Shown here: positions 20,400 to 28,141 of the stretch, in pieces | How the letters are laid out: the number at the start of each line of letters is the position of its first letter | Position numbering within the stretch: the first letter of the stretch is position 1 | Assembly (NCBI GenBank): GCA_013416795.1 | Contig: RQSC01000011.1 | Coordinates: 50,721-114,720, forward strand | Source of the DNA: Prasinococcaceae sp. CCMP 1430 | Taxonomy: Eukaryota; Plantae; Prasinodermophyta | Direction: 5' to 3' | Length of the DNA: 64,000 nt | Notes under the pieces: model-generated | Told to the model about the DNA's origin: nothing | Databases searched by the model: none | Seen by the model: the letters and a program-made list of their open reading frames with translations, nothing else | Position numbers and translations under genes: made by a program

Positions 20400-21456
20400 G
20401 CGCGCGAGTGGCCGCCGCCGCAGCGGCGGCGGCGGCGGCGCTCGCGCGCGCGCGTCCCCAGGTGTAACGCGCGCTGCCTGGATGTGCGCGCTGCCTCTCG
20501 CCGGCGCCGGCACTGCCGCCGCCGCCGCCGCCGCTGCGGCGCCGCGCCGTGCGCCTCGCTCGGGAGGGAGATTCGCCAATGTTCGTCGTACACCCTCACT
20601 TTGAATAAGTTCCGGTTGATGCCGCATGCATTTGATACAGTAGGACTACGTACGTACAGTCAAGTCCTGGACGCGCGAGTCGGCGCTGCGCGCGCGCGCG
20701 CGCGCGCGCGGCCAACCGCCGGCGGTTACATTGGAAAATATGCCGTCAAAAAACATGTTCTCACGTGCCCAGGACGTAACGGTACTACAGCACAGTACTA
20801 CCATCCGGATGGTGGATGTGTCCAGAAGAAGAAACTGCCTCATCAGAGTCTCTCGCCGAAACAGCGAAACCGCCAACCACCACCGCGCGCCGTAGCGACC
20901 TGCGGGGGCGCCGTAGCTCGAGCGGCGAGGCGCCCGGGGCGCGGTGGGGGCGCGCCACGCGGCGAGCAGGGCGCGCCTCGGGGCGATCTCCCGGGCCGAG
21001 GCGCCCGCCCCCGAGGCGGGTGGGTGGGCACACGCTCCGGCTCTCGGCTCCGCCGCCCTCGCGTTCGTCTGGCGCGATGGGGCCCGCACCGGACCAGGGG
21101 GGCTCTGTGGGAGGTCAGGCTGTGCAGCGCCGCGCGAGTGCGAGCCTGGGCGCCGCGTGGCGCCGCACGAACGGCACCGCTGCGCTGCGCACGCTGCCGT
21201 GCGCGGGCATCGGCGAGGCGTTCCCCGCGGGAGCGCCCCCGCGCGCGCTCCCTTGCGGGCCGCTTCGCCCCCGCGACGTGCACGGGGGGCGTTCTCAGTG
21301 CCTTGCTGTGGCGATAGCAAAGCGACGCGGCGCGATGGCTCGACTCGTGCGCGTGGCGCGACCTCAGCGCGTCCGCCCAGTCTGCTGCATCTGCTGCTGA
21401 CGCGTGCCCTCTGCCACCCCGCCCACCTCTCCGTGTGCCCTAGTCCCTGTGAACAG

Positions 21457-24382
21457 GTTCCCCCTGGAGGTGCGGCGTTACCTCGAGGCCTTCGACACCA
21501 ACGGCGACGGCATAGTGGACGTGAGCGAGCTGAAGCGCGCGGCGCAGCAGCTGCAAGACGCGCGCGAGGGCAAGCTGACGGTGGGCATGTTCCCGGAGCG
21601 GCTGCACGAGACGGTGCGCGCGCTGGACGACGAGGGCAACGGCGTGCTGGAGATCGACGAGATCACCGACATGGTCGAGACCTACGCCGCGCTCAAGGAG
21701 GCCAACCGCAAGGGCGAGATTAACATAAGTACGCTGCCGCGCGAGATCCAGCCCACGCTCAAGGTGTTTGACATGGACGGCGACGGCACGGTGGCGCCAA
21801 TGGAGCTCGCGCGCGGCGCCGAGCTCTACCTCGAGTCCAAGAAGATGGTCAAGAAGCTCAGCAAGCTCGCTGTCGCGCTGCTGCTGCTAATGGGCATCAT
21901 GCTGGCGGCCATTGCCGGCATGACCATCGCCGTGGTGGAGATGGCCAAGGAGACGAGCACGGCGGCCGATGGCAAGATGACGGTCAAGAACTCGGGCGGC
22001 AAGGAGACGGCCGTGGCCACCAACCAGAACGAGCTGGAGCTGCCGCTGGGCGCGATGCCCTTCATGCCGACGGATGCGGGCGTCGCCAGGAACATGAAGC
22101 GCATCTCCGTCGTCAACAAGAACACGGGCCTGGAGCTTGAGCGTGAAGTGGCGGGCGTCGACCTCCTGCGCAACGTGTCGCTGCGCATCGTGACCACGAT
22201 GGGCGACTCAATCACCTACGAGGTTGATGGCAGTTCCGACATGAACGTCACCCTCGCCTCGGGCGAGTGGTGGGAATCCAACGCGCTGTGCGGCCACTGC
22301 CAGTCGATCAACGTTATTGCGACGCCAGAGATCCTCGAGGGTCTCGAGCGCGCTTACGCCGCCATCGATGAGGAGGTGGACGCGGAGGTGCGCCGCACGC
22401 TGCTGCACACGGTGGGCGAGACGCCCGATGACAACGCGCATTGGGCCGAGCACGGCTCCAGGAACAACATGGCGCCCGCCCACCTCGCTGTCACCTCGGC
22501 CGAATACCTGGCTGCGCGCGCCGCGTACGACGCGTGCAACTGCGCCTTCGAGGGTGACCCGTGGTGGGCCATCTGGTCTGGCAAGTTCTGGTGGCGCGAC
22601 CACTCGCACGCATTTGCGTACACTGACGCCACCGGCATCGAGCACACGGTGTGCAGCTACGCCAAGCCGCTGTGGGGATGGGTGTGGTCGCCCACCGAGC
22701 GTGGCCAGCCCACGTACTGGTGGGATTGGTGGGGTTACGGCTGGAGATGGCGCTATGTGGCATGCCTCGCAGACTCGGGCTGCGCCTACGGCCAGTGGAA
22801 CCGCTGGACGGGCTGGTGGTTCGTCACCGGCGGCGAGTGGCAGTGCTACGACGCGGCGCGCGGCGCAGGCGCGCACGCCTTCTTCCACAACGACTGCGAC
22901 GGCAGCGAGTCGGATGAGGTAAAGATCGAGTGCTGCTGGGCGCAGTACAACTCGCAGGACACCGACGGCGATGGTCTGAGCAATGCCGCGGAGATGCGAC
23001 TGGGCAGCGACCCGTACGATGCTGACACGGATGGGGACTACGTCCCGGATGGCGACGACCCCAACCCGCTGACCAAGGACAGCTGGCCGGACTCTGACGG
23101 CGACGGCCTGAATGACGAGCAGGAGAAGCGCCGCTACGGGACCGACTGGAATGTGTCGGACACGGACGGCGATGGGCTGTCGGATTTCGAGGAGGTCACG
23201 CGTGCGCAGGCGACCGATCCCTTGAATAATGACACCGACGCAGATGGCCTCAGTGATTCTTTTGAGCAAGGTGGGCAGTATAGCACTGATCCGCTCAATG
23301 CCGATTCCGACAACGACGGGCTCAGCGATGGCGACGAGGTGAATGTGCATTTTACGAGCGCGAGAGACGCAGACTCAGACGGAGACACGCTGAGCGACTC
23401 GAAGGAGATCGAAATCGGCACCGATCCGAACAACGCGGACACAGACTATGACGGTCTCTTTGACGGCGCGGAGCTCTCCATGGGCACCGACCCGAACAAC
23501 CCGGACACGGATGGCGACGGTCTCTTTGATGGTGAGGAGAAGAGCGTTCCTGATCATCTCTTCGAAGGCTCTAACCCTAGTGCTATGAATTGCGACAGCG
23601 GCAATGGGTACTGCGCTTTTGCGAATCCTGCACAAGGCATGCAGCGAACGGGCACGGATCCGCTGAAAAACGACACAGATGGTGATGGGATAGGCGATTT
23701 GGACGAACTCAACAGGACACAGTACACATTGGGTACTCGCTGGCGACATCCCCAGCGGCCGTCCGGCACCGGCACCGGCACTGACCCCAATCAGCATGAC
23801 ACGGACTCGGATGGGCTGTCAGATAGTGAGGAGGTGGACCTTGGCACTGACCCCAACGATCGCGACACGGACAAGGATGGCCTTTGGGATGGTGCGGAGG
23901 TCCATCAGCTCAAGACCAATCCGCTCAACTACACGGTGCTCTCACCGCCTCCGTCGCCTCCACCGCCTCCCGTGCCGCCACCACCGGACGCTCCGCCACC
24001 GAAGGCGCCGCCACCGAATGCTCCGCCACCAAACGCGCCGCCACCGAAGGCTCCGCCACCGAAGGCGCCGCCACCGAAGGCTCCGCCACCGAACGCGCCG
24101 CCACCGAACGCTCCGCCACCGAAGGCGCCGCCACCGAACGCTCCGCCACCGAACGCTCCGCCACCGAAGGCTCCGCCACCGGACGCTCCGCCACCGAACG
24201 CGCCGCCACCGAATGCTCCGCCACCGAATGCTCCCCCACCGAACGCGCCGCCACCGAACGCTCCCCCACCGAACGCTCCGCCACCAAAGGCTCCGCCACC
24301 GAACGCGCCGCCACCGAACGCGCCGCCACCTAACGCTCCGCCGCCGGACGCGCCGCCGCCGGACGCGCCGCCGCCGTTCTAA
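21457..24382 (+). CDS. Type II membrane protein: EF-hands, TM helix, Trp/Cys-rich domain, 12 TSP3-like Ca-binding repeats, Pro-rich tail; 5' exon unresolved
   Basis: EF loops DTNGDGIVDVSE, DDEGNGVLEIDE and DMDGDGTVAPME; hydrophobic LAVALLLLMGIMLAAIAGMTIAVV; repeated D[TS]DxDGL.D..E...GTDP. Acceptor gaacag ends at 21456. Confidence 0.8.
23978..24378 (+). repeat. 15-bp coding minisatellite (~26 units) encoding PPP[N/K/D]A
   Basis: Unit of the type ccgccaccgaacgct, read directly. Confidence 0.95.
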
Positions 24383-24610: not shown

Positions 24611-24988
24611 NNNNNNNNNNNNNNNNNNNNNNNNNNNGGCGGCCGCCGCCGCGGTCGCGCGTGCGGTGGCTCCCGCGCGACAGGGCGTACGCGGTCGCCC
24701 GTGCGTCGACGCATGCTAAAGGCGCCAGAGCTCACCAAGTCGGGGCGCTTCGACCAGCGCGGCGCGGCCCTACCACTTGCGTGAAAAGCGCGCGCGGTAT
24801 TCAGTCCACAATTCCACATCAATTTGCACTAAATGCGCTTTGCTCGGGTTGCGCCCGACCTTGCACGCCTCTCCGCATGCGGATGGATGTGTGCGCGGGG
24901 TCCGCATGCGCGCCCCCGCTTGCACGCGCCCGCTTTGAGTTGCCCGCGTCAGCTAGGACGGGGGAGGGAGGAAAGGGAGACGCACATA

Positions 24989-25070
24989 CACACTCGTACG
25001 AGCAGCAGCAGCAGCGAAGAGGGTGCGATTAAAGTGAAGGAAGACGCAAGCGCATGGTTGCGTAGCGCGC
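24989..25070 (+). repeat. Dispersed direct repeat, copy 1 (core AGGGTGCGATTAaAGTGAAGGAAGACGCAAGCGCAtGGTTGCGTAGCGCGC, with a CAG-rich 5' extension shared with copy 3)
   Basis: Aligned by eye to the copies at 25283, 27202 and 27696. Confidence 0.9.
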
Positions 25071-25084
25071 CTGCCAAAGGTCGA

Positions 25085-25152
25085 TGGCCGCGCGCGCGGT
25101 GTGGCCGCGCGCGCGGTGTGGCCGCGCGCGCGGTGTGGCCGCGCGCGCGGTG
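25085..25152 (+). repeat. 17-bp tandem array, (TGGCCGCGCGCGCGGTG)x4
   Basis: Four exact units read directly. Confidence 0.95.
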
Positions 25153-25284
25153 TGTATTGGCAGGCAAGAAGCTCGCGATGGCAATTGCGTATACGCCCTG
25201 CGAGGAGTTCATGGCAAGCAGATGTACCTCGGCAGCTTTCCAATACAGGCTGACGCCATAGAGAGTTTACTTCAAGTAGTGTAG
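25153..25284 (+). pseudogene. Truncated AP2-domain-like fragment
   Basis: VYALRGVHGKQMYLGSFPIQADA resembles AP2 strand 3 plus helix start (GKxxYLGxF...EEAA); the first half of the domain is missing. Confidence 0.45.
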
Positions 25285-25337
25285 GGTGCGATTACAATAC
25301 GAGAAGACGCAAGCGCAAGGTTGCGTAGCGCGCGTGT
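25283..25337 (+). repeat. Dispersed direct repeat, copy 2
   Basis: agggtgcgattacaatacgagaagacgcaagcgcaaggttgcgtagcgcgcgtgt. Confidence 0.9.
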
Positions 25338-25352
25338 GTAAGATCTAGGTGC

Positions 25353-27200
25353 ATGATGTGGCCGCGCGCGCGGTGTGGCCGCGCGCGCGGTGTGGCCGCG
25401 CGCGCGGTGTGGCCGCGCGCGCGGTGTGCGCGCGCGCGGTGTCAGGAACAAAGTGTCGATGATGACGTGATCTTCATGGGCGTCGTCACTGCAGACGAGG
25501 CCCGCTCTCGTCGCAAGATCCAGGATGAGGCGGATGCAAGGCTCGCCAGAGAGGCTGCACAGGCCCAGCAGAGGGCCAGGGCAATGGAGCGGGAGGAACG
25601 CATCGCGGCTGGCCGGGCAGAGGACGCAGCACGTAAGCGCAAGTTGCCGACCCCTGACGGAAAGGAGTTTTTCTGCTGCACCCACTGCGAGGCAATCAAC
25701 CGCTACGTAAAGGCCACCAATGTGTGCAACACATTCACCTGTTCCAGGTGCGGCCAGGTCTCGATTGCGTGGCGGAAAGAAACGCGTGCAGCCTCGAAGG
25801 CACGACAGCACCAGAAGTCGCAGTTTGCCCAAGCTGTTGCAACAAGCGCCAAGGCAGCGGCTTGGGAAGGGGAGACGTCGTTGTCGAAGAAGAAACAGCC
25901 GAAGAAGCAACAGTGCACAGGCGGCTCAAGGAAGTCGCCTTTGACCGACGCACGCCTCGACACCAAAGACAAGCACGCGCACGAGTTTGCTGGCCACACT
26001 CTGGGCAAGCTAGACGAGCGCACCACTCAACATGTGGGGGTCATCGCCGCTCGCATTGTTGATGAAAGCCATCTTGTGCGCAAAGCGGCACTAGACGCTC
26101 TCGGCAAGCTTGGTGAACACGCCACACCGCACATTGGTGCCATCGCCGCACGCCTGGAGGATGCCAGATCCTTGGTGCGTACAGCGGCTATTGGTGCGCT
26201 TGGTCGGCTTGGTGAGCACGCCGCCTCGCAAGTGCATGCGGTAGCCGCATGCATCGACGACAAGGACTTGCAGACGCGTGAGGCAGCCATCAACGCACTT
26301 GGCAAGCTCGGCAAGCATTCCGCGTCCCATGTGGAGTCAATCATCGCATGCCTCGGCGACGACAGCATGCGAGTACGTAAGGCGGTTGTTTCCGCGCTCG
26401 GTGAGCTAGGTGAGCACTCCTTGCCACACGTTGATGCTATTGCCGCACGCGTTGAAGACAAGCACTGCGAGGTGCGCGATGCGGCTGTTCAAGCTGTTCA
26501 AGCCCTTGGAAAGGTCTTGGAGCGTGCTGTGCGTGTCGCTGATATCAAGGCGGACAAGAATGCAAACGAAGAGTGCGCGCAAGGAGGGAAACCCGCGCCG
26601 CTGCCGCCTCCGCCAGAGCCCGAGGCCGAGGCCGAGGCCGAGGCCGAGGCTGCGCCCGAGGCCGAGGCCGCCGCGCCGAATCACAAGCCGGGCCAGCAAA
26701 AGCGGCAGCGGGCGCCCAAGGCGCCCGCCTACAGCGGGCGGGGCCGCCCACGCGGCTACAAGACAGCAAGGACGCGGGACAGGGAGCGGCGACATGAGCT
26801 CGCGGCCAAGCTTCCGCGCGACGCGAGAGCGCGCTTCGTAAAAAAAGGGAAAGCAGCCATAAACTCGAATTCCGCCCGCGACAAACGCGAGAGGGGCATG
26901 CACGGCGAAGAGAGGCTGCCATCAACAGGCGCGGGCAAGAACGACAGCGTGGGCGGCGCGCCGGCGCAGAGGGCCGCGCAGGCGACCAAGCAGACCATCA
27001 CCGCCACCGCGGCGCTCAGCTACATTCACGACGTCAAGAACAAGTTCAAGGACAACATCGGCATCTACTACAAGTTCCTCAAGATCATGACGCAATTCAA
27101 GGCGCAGGATATCACGCCTCAGCGCTTGATTAAGCAGGTGAACGAGCTCTTTGCAGACCACGAGGATCTTATTCAGGGCTTTGCAGCTTTCGTGCCATAG
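25353..27200 (+). CDS. 615-aa mosaic protein: SIM-like motif, coiled coil, C4 zinc ribbon, ~6 HEAT repeats, AT-hook, C-terminal PAH (Sin3-type) domain
   Basis: DDDVIFMG; CTHC-x17-CSRC; 31-aa repeats such as IAARLEDARSLVRTAAIGALGRLGEHA; GRGRPRG; ALSYIHDVKNKF...YYKFLKIMTQFK...VNELFADHEDLIQGFAAFVP. Confidence 0.7.
   Translation: MMWPRARCGRARGVAARAVWPRARCARARCQEQSVDDDVIFMGVVTADEARSRRKIQDEADARLAREAAQAQQRARAMEREERIAAGRAEDAARKRKLPTPDGKEFFCCTHCEAINRYVKATNVCNTFTCSRCGQVSIAWRKETRAASKARQHQKSQFAQAVATSAKAAAWEGETSLSKKKQPKKQQCTGGSRKSPLTDARLDTKDKHAHEFAGHTLGKLDERTTQHVGVIAARIVDESHLVRKAALDALGKLGEHATPHIGAIAARLEDARSLVRTAAIGALGRLGEHAASQVHAVAACIDDKDLQTREAAINALGKLGKHSASHVESIIACLGDDSMRVRKAVVSALGELGEHSLPHVDAIAARVEDKHCEVRDAAVQAVQALGKVLERAVRVADIKADKNANEECAQGGKPAPLPPPPEPEAEAEAEAEAAPEAEAAAPNHKPGQQKRQRAPKAPAYSGRGRPRGYKTARTRDRERRHELAAKLPRDARARFVKKGKAAINSNSARDKRERGMHGEERLPSTGAGKNDSVGGAPAQRAAQATKQTITATAALSYIHDVKNKFKDNIGIYYKFLKIMTQFKAQDITPQRLIKQVNELFADHEDLIQGFAAFVP
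25359..25441 (+). repeat. 17-bp tandem array: 4 exact units plus one 15-bp degenerate unit
   Basis: Same unit as 25085-25152. Confidence 0.95.
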
Positions 27201-27201
27201 G

Positions 27202-27260
27202 CACACGAGTACCAGCAACAGCAGCGAAGAGGGTGCGATTACAGTGAAGGAGGACGCAAG
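27202..27260 (+). repeat. Dispersed direct repeat, copy 3 (3'-truncated, carries the CAG-rich 5' extension)
   Basis: cacacgagtaccagcaacagcagcgaagagggtgcgattacagtgaaggaggacgcaag, aligned to 24989-25050. Confidence 0.9.
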
Positions 27261-27693
27261 GTCAAGTTCAGTTCCTCCACAGCGTCGATGATGGAGAGGA
27301 CCATGGCGTCGGGGTCCAGCTTGCGGATCTCGGTTGTACGTGCGAAGGGTGGTCTGCTCCGCACGCTGCAGAGCGTCGCCTGCGTGTGCGAGGAACGCGT
27401 CAGCGAGTTAAGCAGCGCGGTCATGGACCGCGGTGCGTTGCGAGTACCCCCTTACCGCCCCCTGGGGGTCGTCGGGCAGGGAGGTGACCGCCGTCAGGTC
27501 CGGCAGGGGGGCTGCGGTCGGCGTCGACGCAGACGATGCTGCGGCGGGCGGCGCAGGGGGCAGACGGGTGAGCGCCTGCTGCAGCTGCTGCAGCAGCGGC
27601 TGCAGCTGCTGCATCTCCTGCCGCTGGTGGGCGATCAGCTCGCTGAGCTCGCTGAGCTGGGTGTTCTGGGTGGTCTGGGCCTCCTCCAGCTGC
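27261..27693 (-). pseudogene. Fragment of a spliced gene on the minus strand (Gln-rich coiled coil, Pro/Ala linker, 76-nt intron at 27455-27380)
   Basis: QLEEAQTTQNTQLSELSELIAHQRQEMQQLQPLLQQLQQAL...DDPQGA, then GTAAGG...GCTGAC...CACGCAG, then ATLCSV...EIRKLDPDAMVLSIIDAVEELN. Confidence 0.5.
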
Positions 27694-27695
27694 TA

Positions 27696-27750
27696 AGAGT
27701 GCGATTACAGTGCAGGAAGACGCAAGCGCAAGGTTGCGTAGCGCGCGTGT
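27696..27750 (+). repeat. Dispersed direct repeat, copy 4
   Basis: agagtgcgattacagtgcaggaagacgcaagcgcaaggttgcgtagcgcgcgtgt. Confidence 0.9.
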
Positions 27751-28141
27751 CTGAGATCGAGCGCGGCGCGCGCGTGTTTTTTTCGCGTGCGGTACGGAGG
27801 GCGCGAGCGCGTGCGCGCGCCACTGTGTGGTCGTAATACACGCGGGCTTGAGGGGGAGCACGACCGTCCCCTCGCGCCCGCGCGCGCGCGCCCGCGCGGC
27901 ATCCTCAGTTCCCTCTCACACAGCGCATGCGCGCAGCGCACGCGCGCGCACGCGCGAGATTCCGCTCGGGGAACGCGCGCGCGGCGGAAAGCAAGACACT
28001 GCCACTGTCGCACCCTTTGCAGCAGTCACTGTTGAAGCACGTTCTTACTTCCGCACGAATGCTAAAAGCGGGGGCCATGAGTGATAACCTACGAAAATGA
28101 GGCTGCCAACGATTCCAGCCTCGCGCGCACACAGCGCTCGT

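Follow-up and report, generated by a model that had tools for sequence, protein, structure and literature searches.

A lineage-restricted HEAT-PAH open reading frame in Prasinococcaceae sp. CCMP 1430 looks like a gene being born or dying

Positions 25353-27200 on the forward strand of a 64-kb stretch of Prasinococcaceae sp. CCMP 1430 DNA (the window; contig RQSC01000011.1) form, as an earlier note on this DNA had claimed, a single uninterrupted ORF without introns, with 615 codons (615 aa) followed by a stop codon. The explanation that we consider probable is that this is a lineage-restricted chimeric ORF, located in an intergenic stretch repeatedly remodelled by repeats and not now maintained for the protein that it encodes. 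It has the look of a gene that is either emerging or dying out, rather than of a conserved chromatin regulator. An orphan N terminus, a HEAT array with a 33-aa period, a disordered basic linker and one Sin3-PAH1-like domain share one frame, and in the scenario that we favor, small foldback/MITE-like repeats and 17-nt arrays have remodelled the surrounding intergenic stretch again and again. The ORF would then be either a once functional lineage-specific gene that lost its constraint and is decaying, or a fusion that was never essential.

Two parts of the ORF are backed by Pfam: a HEAT array and one C-terminal PAH domain. The HEAT array (25986-26531, forward strand; aa ∼212-393) matches HEAT (E = 3.6e-20) and HEAT_2 (E = 1e-18), with scores well above the Pfam gathering thresholds (70.6 vs 23.5 for HEAT, 67.8 vs 27.7 for HEAT_2, and 42.7 vs 27 for HEAT_EZ). 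Its matches in the PDB are HEAT chains of the alphaRep/PBS type, with E-values down to 6e-39. The array of about six 31-aa repeats that had been noted earlier is therefore genuine, but self-matches at offsets of 99, 198, and 297 nt give a period of 99 nt, i.e. 33 aa, and ∼5.5 units. Among natural proteins, its nearest relatives come from marine metagenomes, have HEAT repeats only, and are 34-46% identical across the array. Membership in the phycobilin lyase and NblB equivalog families was rejected; because the scores are far under the NCBIfam cut-offs (54 vs 300 and 33 vs 600 bits), a bilin-lyase function should not be inferred.

The PAH domain (26991-27197, forward strand; aa 547-615) is PAH1-like as assessed by Pfam, PDB, and an AlphaFold model. 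PF02671 matches one stretch, aa 571-614, with 50.1 bits against a cut-off of 21.3 (E = 2e-13), and a Pfam scan of the protein reveals no further PAH domain, which bears out the single terminal PAH domain reported earlier. In the PDB, the domain is closest to the PAH1 of Sin3 from yeast and mammals and of Pst1/Pst3 from S. pombe (8e-18 to 1e-16), and the stop codon comes directly after the terminal F-V-P of the domain. No match to Sin3_corepress/HID (PF08295) or to the Sin3 C-terminal region was found in the ORF at E ≤ 1. SID helices of transcription factors are bound by PAH1, which folds as a bundle of four helices (PMC6168491). By analogy, the PAH1-like bundle encoded here could bind amphipathic SID helices without an HDAC-interaction region, an activity that would not be preserved in our favored explanation. 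Among the 62 short PAH proteins of the best PAH matches, 51 have no Sin3 co-repressor domain, a few join PAH with RING, PB1, or PHD, and none has HEAT repeats.

Both the 195-aa N-terminal segment and the linker of the ORF are orphans. The N-terminal part of the conserved ORF body (25443-26027, forward strand; aa 31-225) has no homologue beyond its own locus and no Pfam or PDB match above chance level. It holds the SIM-like string DDDVIFMG (aa 36-43; 25458-25481), a long helix predicted for aa 47-95, RKRK (aa 94-97), the pattern C109xxC112-x17-C130xxC133 (25674-25751), and a Lys-rich linker. DDDVIFMG, which is a string only, precedes the one internal Met that is conserved, and depends for its translation on upstream ATGs that are not conserved. 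Family matches of the four-Cys region, which the earlier note had labelled a Zn-ribbon, are at chance level (E = 0.16-0.7). In a single-sequence AlphaFold model of the ORF, which has a mean pLDDT of 59 and is useful for the helix, HEAT, and PAH parts only, the N-terminal helix has a pLDDT of ∼80 and the Cys region is <50. Between the HEAT array and the PAH domain lies a disordered linker (26532-26990, forward strand). It contains the (EA)n microsatellite that had been claimed, i.e. (GAGGCC)n encoding Pro/(EA)n at 26616-26670, whose length varies between alleles, and an AT-hook-like GRGRPRG (aa 462-468; 26736-26756), which is too short a motif for statistics and has no Pfam match even at E ≤ 10. 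The SIM-like, KRK, CxxC-x17-CxxC, and AT-hook motifs of the earlier note are thus present as strings, but lack statistical support. A basic stretch, RHELAAKLPRDARARF, follows at aa 480-495 (26790-26837). It had been read as NF-YA/CCT-like, a reading that we rejected since no Pfam family, CBFB_NFYA and CCT included, matches aa 393-546 at E ≤ 10 and an indel falls within the stretch in one lineage, the third described below. That all five alleles retain the AT-hook string and the four Cys without change speaks against neutral evolution. If the ORF is translated, its basic patches and AT-hook-like motif would most plausibly make the product nuclear. As previously suggested, codon composition breaks between the HEAT and PAH blocks, with a GC3 of 0.58 in the former and 0.80 in the latter (0.98 at most in a 50-codon window). 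The likely real genes of the window have a GC3 of ∼0.79-0.94, and that of the ORF is lower than this host coding norm.

The unfamiliar architecture proved to be unique to this locus. The only full-length relatives among 5.8 billion clustered proteins are alleles of the same locus, rather than orthologues across algae, and the HEAT-PAH fusion is confined to one species complex, recurring at 95-98% DNA identity in contigs of that locus from Tara and other marine metagenomes. A HMMER search with the C-terminal 176 aa recovered the linker nowhere but in the same gene, and a protein language-model atlas offered no usable match. Outside the locus, the best relatives share 46% identity for HEAT and ∼43% for PAH, and there is no close donor for any block, which leaves the claim that the protein was recently assembled unsupported. 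Viral contigs contain no relative of the ORF, and a viral origin was rejected on this basis.

In all contigs with informative flanks, the ORF is at the same chromosomal locus. Four alleles are intact over 1.8 kb, and all their indels are in frame and in tandem-repeat contexts; this intactness runs against a neutral reading, though divergence is only ∼1%. A third lineage (L002-L005), represented by eight contigs from several samples, is disrupted: a repeat insertion of 75 nt has brought in a 7-nt target-site duplication and an in-frame TAG, Met42 is lost (ATG to ATT), and a 4-nt deletion (26302-26305, forward strand) shifts the frame in HEAT unit 4. This lineage keeps a 270-aa ORF that ends in the PAH domain. 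The earlier note had held that an unexpressed ORF broken by long reads would count against its proposal; the break was found, in spirit, in these wild alleles.

We found no detectable protein-level constraint on the ORF, in which nonsynonymous and synonymous changes accrue at the neutral ratio. The four intact alleles differ by 20 nonsynonymous and 5 synonymous changes, where the neutral expectation is 3.2:1. The counts are 15 to 2 (omega 2.35) for the window and the Tara allele, and 45.5 to 16.5 (omega 0.86) when the window is compared with the third lineage; all of these are within-species comparisons, without an outgroup, and such comparisons inflate nonsynonymous counts. For the pair of window and Tara genomes, the neighboring SMP-C2 gene shows 15 nonsynonymous to 26 synonymous changes (omega 0.19). 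Fisher p-values were 4e-4 and 8e-4, and omega ≤ 0.5 was rejected (p = 0.04 and 0.02). Changes are evenly spread across segments and include conserved PAH positions. For the PAH domain alone, the window differs from the third lineage by 8.5 nonsynonymous and 1.5 synonymous changes, and three PAH singletons among the alleles are nonsynonymous, e.g. Q608E in the conserved LIQGF motif. Considering that the domains still score strongly, loss of constraint would be recent, or constraint merely weak. Divergence between the window and the Tara allele is ∼1% in the ORF, 1.5-4% in the flanks, and 5.4% at SMP-C2 synonymous sites. That the ORF is less diverged than its flanks is not what pure neutrality at equal coalescence depth predicts.

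These results bear directly on the proposal that the ORF encodes a chromatin protein or Sin3-partner decoy. In its fullest form, the ORF would be a young gene, functional and specific to this lineage, for a nuclear adaptor or Sin3-PAH1 "decoy", whose PAH1-like domain captures repressor SID helices, whose AT-hook and basic patches tether it to chromatin, and whose HEAT solenoid binds another partner; having no HDAC-interaction domain, the product would compete with Sin3, and the high rate of nonsynonymous change would be that of a new gene evolving adaptively or under relaxed constraint. The intact frame of four alleles, the genuine PAH1-like and HEAT domains, the conservation of the Cys and of RGRP, and a divergence that is lower in the ORF than in its flanks are consistent with this proposal, and the omega of the closest pair could hint at positive selection. 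However, omega is not significantly >1, and changes fall evenly over segments rather than sparing conserved PAH positions. In addition, the frame is no longer open in the third lineage, the region of the start codon is non-conserved and in this genome repeat-derived (see below), and the ORF has neither a Sin3 HID nor a further PAH domain. With no purifying selection (20:5; omega 0.86 against 0.19 for the neighbor), a non-conserved 5′ end, and broken natural alleles, we consider a functional adaptor or decoy unlikely, and an ORF not now maintained for its protein better explains the data.

The sequences that flank the ORF contain a family of small repeats, with four copies near the ORF and none elsewhere in the 64-kb window. 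Copy A (24989-25084) is followed by four units of a 17-nt tandem array (25085-25154), and copy B (25273-25356) by five units (25357-25442), all on the forward strand. Copy A is shared with the Tara alleles, which do not have the array, and copy B is identical to a copy in L002 (71/71). Between them, a spacer (25155-25272) is specific to the window genome, and metagenome alleles have instead an unrelated 208-nt segment that holds their in-frame ATG. The possibility that the 128-nt spacer between repeats A and B is a relic of a duplicated ORF was rejected because local alignments were no better than those of shuffled sequences; the spacer does not significantly resemble the ends of the ORF. Importantly, since the ATG of the ORF (25353) and codons 1-30 are inside copy B and its 17-nt array, the annotated N terminus is repeat-derived; these codons are missing from every related allele, which have unrelated sequence in their place. 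Downstream, a truncated copy C (27202-27266, forward strand) begins 2 nt past the stop codon, and copy D (27687-27774, forward strand) follows. On the reverse strand, a coiled-coil gene piece (27239-27693; exons 27693-27456 and 27379-27239, with an inferred GTAAGG...CAG intron), whose exons were scanned one by one rather than as a joined product, has its TAA stop within repeat C. The window and Tara alleles have this piece, and L004/L005 lack it.

The flanking repeats fold as a perfect hairpin of ∼36 bp (dG -45 kcal/mol, z = -10), and L002 contains a 68-nt insert with a 7-nt AGGAACA duplication where L001 has the empty site. They qualify as MITE/foldback elements by their inverted repeats, target-site duplication, and insertion polymorphism. 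The repeat core has no match in JGI metagenome contigs or in IMG/VR, and Rfam connects the repeat with no known RNA family, spliced leader, or snRNA. Introners have been described in GC-rich picoalgae. AG|G precedes the conserved ORF body in all alleles, and GT-like starts occur within the repeat element; an introner reading of the repeats was considered, and not adopted.

Another explanation is that a mobile or recombining unit carries the ORF body as cargo, either as gene fragments that foldback/MITE-like repeats captured between them (Pack-MULE-like) or as a cassette that lineages exchange. Homology between lineages starts exactly at 25442 and ends at 27216/27217, within a few nt of the ORF ends, and outside these limits repeat arrangements differ. 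In L002, the ORF body lies between direct and inverted copies of the same repeat, and repeat copies are 100% identical between lineages whose ORFs are 5% different. The cargo explanation would account for the sharp breakpoints at both ends and for the lower divergence of the body (∼1%) than of the flanks (1.5-4%), and it is consistent with the GC3 break within the ORF. However, the chromosomal locus is always the same, neither a second copy of the ORF body, looked for in the window, JGI metagenomes, and viral contigs, nor any donor gene was found. Moreover, flank variation may be partly artefactual, because 60-90-nt repeats can cause breaks or misjoins in metagenome assemblies from short reads. 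We therefore view this explanation as doubtful. We are equally hesitant about gene birth by transposon-driven domain shuffling, in which the repeats would have joined the orphan N terminus, HEAT, and an exon resembling Sin3 PAH1 in one frame, giving a new nuclear adaptor or competitor of Sin3 whose intact, 5′-remodelled, and frameshifted alleles now segregate in the wild. Least probable, and in our view quite improbable, is that only the 3′ end is a gene, a ∼100-aa single-PAH mini-protein from Met516 preceded by 515 codons of untranslated leader or non-genic DNA open by chance: a public eukaryote protein set does contain exactly such a 100-aa PAH-only model from this genome, and not the 615-aa ORF, the PAH part has a host-like GC3 (0.80-0.98), long spurious ORFs are frequent in the window (65-70% GC), and the 270-aa ORF of the frameshifted lineage is still open, but the bona fide upstream HEAT array in the same frame is not a product of chance, the PAH segment is itself unconstrained (8.5 to 1.5, plus the three singletons), and the model may just reflect a homology-guided call that was cut back to the first Met.

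If the neutral reading, i.e. an ORF not now maintained for its protein, is true, it would be wrong to regard this "mosaic chromatin protein" as a conserved regulator, and in a GC-rich genome a long frame with two real domains can lack constraint. At this locus, several natural alleles of a unique HEAT-PAH fusion (intact, 5′-remodelled, and frameshifted) lie beside active small repeats, which makes the rise and decay of chimeric genes in marine picoeukaryote populations tractable here. A PAH1 domain on its own would also serve as a simple reagent for finding SID-bearing factors in this alga.

How does the ORF compare with known systems? Its array resembles PBS-lyase/alphaRep-type HEAT arrays (HEAT_2, HEAT_EZ, HEAT_PBS; NblB, CpcE/CpeY) in its regular short units, its A-L-G-x-L-G ... 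V-R-x-A-A signature, and its strong Pfam, NCBIfam, and PDB matches, but it has a period of 33 rather than 31 aa, and is fused to PAH, a fusion that none of these relatives has. Its last 69 aa can be aligned over their full length with PAH1 of Sin3 (Pst1/Pst3, yeast Sin3, Sin3A/B), with ∼45-50% identity by eye, and are predicted to form a confident helical bundle (pLDDT 76-91). Unlike Sin3, which has three or four PAH domains, Sin3_corepress/HID, and a C-terminal region, the ORF has a single PAH and neither of the others, ends at the last PAH1 residue, shows no detected constraint, and is at most 43% identical in its PAH to any sequenced Sin3. It resembles short non-Sin3 proteins with a single or double PAH in that its PAH lies outside canonical Sin3, but none of the 62 best-matching short proteins has HEAT and none shares the linker or N terminus of the ORF. 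Finally, the flanking repeats behave like MITE/foldback elements and like those in TE-driven chimeric genes (Pack-MULE-like), with a hairpin, a 7-nt target duplication, polymorphism between lineages, and the start codon of this allele supplied by a repeat. Unlike in MITE/Pack-MULE systems, the locus has no transposase, defined family, or second cargo copy, and domain capture by the repeats is at most putative.

We consider it reasonably probable that the 615-codon ORF at 25353-27200 (+) is a lineage-restricted chimeric ORF lying in a transposon-remodelled intergenic region and at present not maintained for its protein. G+C is 63-71% across the window, and long ORFs are densely packed; this composition, together with the Tara matches described below, points to a GC-rich marine picoeukaryote as the source. 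As an earlier note on this DNA had proposed, the ORF encodes HEAT repeats and a single terminal PAH domain, both of which are matched by Pfam: a HEAT array (HEAT 3.6e-20, HEAT_2 1e-18, HEAT_EZ 7e-11) and one PAH domain at the extreme C terminus (2.1e-13, 50.1 bits against a cut-off of 21.3), with the stop codon immediately after its terminal F-V-P. The HEAT block is of the PBS-lyase/alphaRep type, with short regular units, as assessed by NCBIfam and by matches to alphaRep chains in the PDB (down to 6e-39). Its unit is 33 aa, and not 31 aa as previously proposed, because the ORF DNA matches itself at offsets of 99, 198, and 297 nt. The codon contrast described between the two blocks was also found, with a GC3 of 0.58 in HEAT and 0.80 in PAH (peak of 0.98 in a 50-codon window), next to 0.69-0.74 in the N-terminal part, 0.78 in the linker, and ~0.79-0.94 in likely real genes elsewhere in the window. 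In a single-sequence AlphaFold model, the confident regions are a long helix (aa 47-95), the HEAT solenoid (pLDDT ~70-80), and the PAH bundle (76-91); the rest, including the four-Cys region, has low confidence.

The short motifs listed in the earlier note are all present as strings, i.e. DDDVIFMG (aa 36-43), RKRK (aa 94-97), C109xxC112-x17-C130xxC133 (aa 109-133), GRGRPRG (aa 462-468), RHELAAKLPRDARARF (aa 480-495), and a (GAGGCC)n microsatellite (26616-26670), but none is backed by a profile match. Pfam returned nothing, or chance-level families only, for the N-terminal 195 aa and the linker even at E ≤ 10; neither NF-YA nor CCT was matched at this threshold, and an NF-YA/CCT-like stretch is not supported. 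The PDB matches of the Cys region have E values of 0.2-0.3.

When 5.8 billion clustered proteins were searched with a word index, a single cluster of full-length relatives was returned (P0001, 97% identity), every other match being to the HEAT array only (17-45% coverage). Whether queried separately or within the complete protein, the N-terminal 195 aa had no relative beyond this cluster. Exhaustive HMMER analysis of the last 176 aa against 1.84 billion representatives showed that the linker is common to one protein only (P0105, 90% identity), the remaining ~1,500 matches consisting of the PAH domain alone at ≤43% identity. HEAT repeats occur in none of the 62 short proteins (≤800 aa) among the best 150 of these matches, a few of which pair PAH with RING, PB1, or PHD. 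Taken together, these comparisons indicate that the HEAT-PAH fusion, the N terminus, and the linker are restricted to this one gene. Viral contigs contain no relative, the exact 615-aa product is absent from the protein collection, and the public eukaryote set contains no more than a PAH-only model of 100 aa from this genome, identical to aa 516-615. As every block lacks a close donor (best relatives 46% for HEAT and ~43% for PAH), the fusion is not demonstrably recent, contrary to the proposal of recent assembly; it could be an older lineage-specific gene with recent loss of constraint, or the donors may be unsampled.

The related proteins are encoded on metagenome contigs. P0001, P0257, and P0259 lie on Tara scaffolds (L001, L009, and L010) that follow the order of the window, at ~98% identity, from the ORF into the downstream SMP-C2 gene, whereas P0105 and P0256 are encoded by eight contigs that derive from several samples (L002-L005, the third lineage) and share ~95% identity with the ORF body. 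All appear to be alleles of the same locus, and the allele comparisons use contigs that are possibly population consensus sequences. Homology to the window starts at 25442-25445 in all of them and ends at 27216 in L002-L005; outside these limits, arrangements differ. Such breakpoints agree with an origin by capture or as a cassette, which would be compatible with our main reading, but there is no second copy and no donor, and we regard this origin as rather unlikely.

Codons 1-30 of the ORF are a translated 17-nt tandem repeat (25357-25442), and its ATG sits within the tail of a repeat element. This repeat of ~50-90 nt has four copies in the 64-kb window, every one around the ORF: A (24989-25084, followed by four 17-mers), B (25273-25356, followed by five), C (27202-27266, beginning 2 nt past the stop codon), and D (27687-27774). 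In the Tara alleles, copy A is followed by an unrelated 208-nt segment whose in-frame ATG and 30-aa N terminus differ from those of the window. In L002, a 68-nt repeat-B copy accompanied by a 7-nt target duplication (AGGAACA) splits this segment, giving a clean filled site compared with the empty site in L001. An inverted and a direct copy 3' of the L002 stop codon form a hairpin of ~36 bp (dG -45 kcal/mol, z = -10), and in L004/L005 an inverted 17-mer array abuts the 3' end of SMP-C2, with window 27217-28079 missing. On these grounds, the repeats seem to act like small foldback/MITE-like mobile elements. Part of the flank variation could be a short-read assembly artefact at repeats; we argue that much of it is real, given the filled and empty sites and because the same contigs recur across several samples. 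Between lineages with ORFs that are 5% diverged, some repeat copies are 100% identical. Searches of JGI metagenomes and IMG/VR with the repeat core gave no match, and no Rfam family matched the repeat.

Several further features of the locus were observed. The 17-nt unit TGGCCGCGCGCGCGGTG has a near-palindromic core and forms window arrays of four (25085-25154) and five copies; its array is inverted and at another position in L004/L005 (L004:1780-1838). The arrays thus move either jointly with the repeats or in the same manner. A possible fifth copy, inverted and degenerate, is a short stretch at 28015-28035 (-) that looks like the repeat's 5' core (GGGTGCGA..CAGTG). Repeat-B copies (L002:257-304, 633-703, and 2449-2544; window 25273-25356) are 98-100% identical across lineages amid DNA differing by ~5%, and one of them forms a near-perfect 95-nt foldback, which suggests a small mobile element family active now or recently. 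Between repeats C and D, 27239-27693 (-) is a host-like, high-GC3 coiled-coil coding piece of two exons around a ~76-nt GTAAGG...CAG intron, lacking an ATG, with its TAA stop within repeat C and a YAG acceptor right at the edge of repeat D; when its exons were scanned apart, the sole Pfam hint was a sub-threshold SlyX coiled-coil match. The window and the Tara alleles carry this piece, which L004/L005 lack. Downstream of the ORF in L002/L003, L002:2545-3079, which includes a 135-aa gene call on the minus strand, has no match in the 64-kb window or the other contigs, and L004/L005, with an identical ORF allele, run on into SMP-C2. Either the ORF of that lineage occurs in a second genomic context, or the assembly is chimeric at the repeat. 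Upstream, window ~20450-21086 is followed in the metagenome contigs almost immediately by the sequence from 24638 on (L001:436-485; L002:75-86), and these contigs therefore lack the 3.5-kb EF-hand/TSP3/Pro-rich gene (21404-24382). This junction coincides exactly with an assembly gap of the window (N run, 24611-24637), and the missing stretch reflects either a true insertion/deletion polymorphism or a problem of scaffolding.

Codons were aligned in the frame of the window, and changes were counted by Nei-Gojobori. Between the window and L001, nonsynonymous:synonymous changes are 15:2 in the ORF (omega 2.35, dS 0.005) and 15:26 in SMP-C2 (omega 0.19, dS 0.054). For the ORF, the ratio is 20:5 (omega ~1.25) among four intact alleles hand-polarised with L002 and 45.5:16.5 (omega 0.86) between the window and L002, the neutral expectation being 3.2:1. 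In the latter comparison, omega is near 1 per segment (N terminus 1.03, HEAT 0.60, linker 0.77, PAH 1.43). The ORF differs from SMP-C2 in Fisher tests (p = 4e-4 and 8e-4), omega ≤ 0.5 is rejected for the intact alleles (p = 0.04) and the third lineage (p = 0.02), and neutrality was not rejected. Conserved PAH positions are changed in singletons, e.g. Q608E in the L-I-Q-G-F motif and R591L. The third lineage carries three disabling changes, i.e. a repeat insertion whose in-frame TAG separates the upstream ATG from the conserved body, ATT at Met42, and a 4-nt deletion (window 26302-26305) that shifts the frame in HEAT unit 4 and leaves two overlapping ORFs of 312 and 270 aa. Divergence between the window and the Tara alleles is ~1% in the ORF body, 1.5-4% in non-coding flanks, and ~2% in the neighbouring gene, with ORF synonymous sites ten-fold less diverged than those of the neighbour (p = 2e-5, window against Tara allele). 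This low divergence is a poor fit to simple neutrality, but there is no such deficit relative to L002-L005 (3.7% in the ORF, 4-5% in flanks). Possible explanations are shorter local coalescence, inter-lineage recombination or exchange of the repeat-bounded body, or fewer mutations at less GC-rich third positions.

The substitution pattern, the unstable start, and the broken alleles oppose the preservation of a functional Sin3-PAH1 decoy, the role previously suggested, for which domain content is the sole positive support and which we consider improbable. A PAH-only mini-gene is less probable still, the PAH block itself being without constraint. PAH1 domains bind the SID helices of transcription factors (PMC6168491). 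A decoy mechanism would be conceivable because the 615-aa product has a PAH1-like domain and, unlike Sin3, no HDAC-interaction domain; its last 69 residues align over their whole length with PAH1 of S. pombe Pst1/Pst3, yeast Sin3, and mammalian Sin3A/B (8e-18 to 1e-16).
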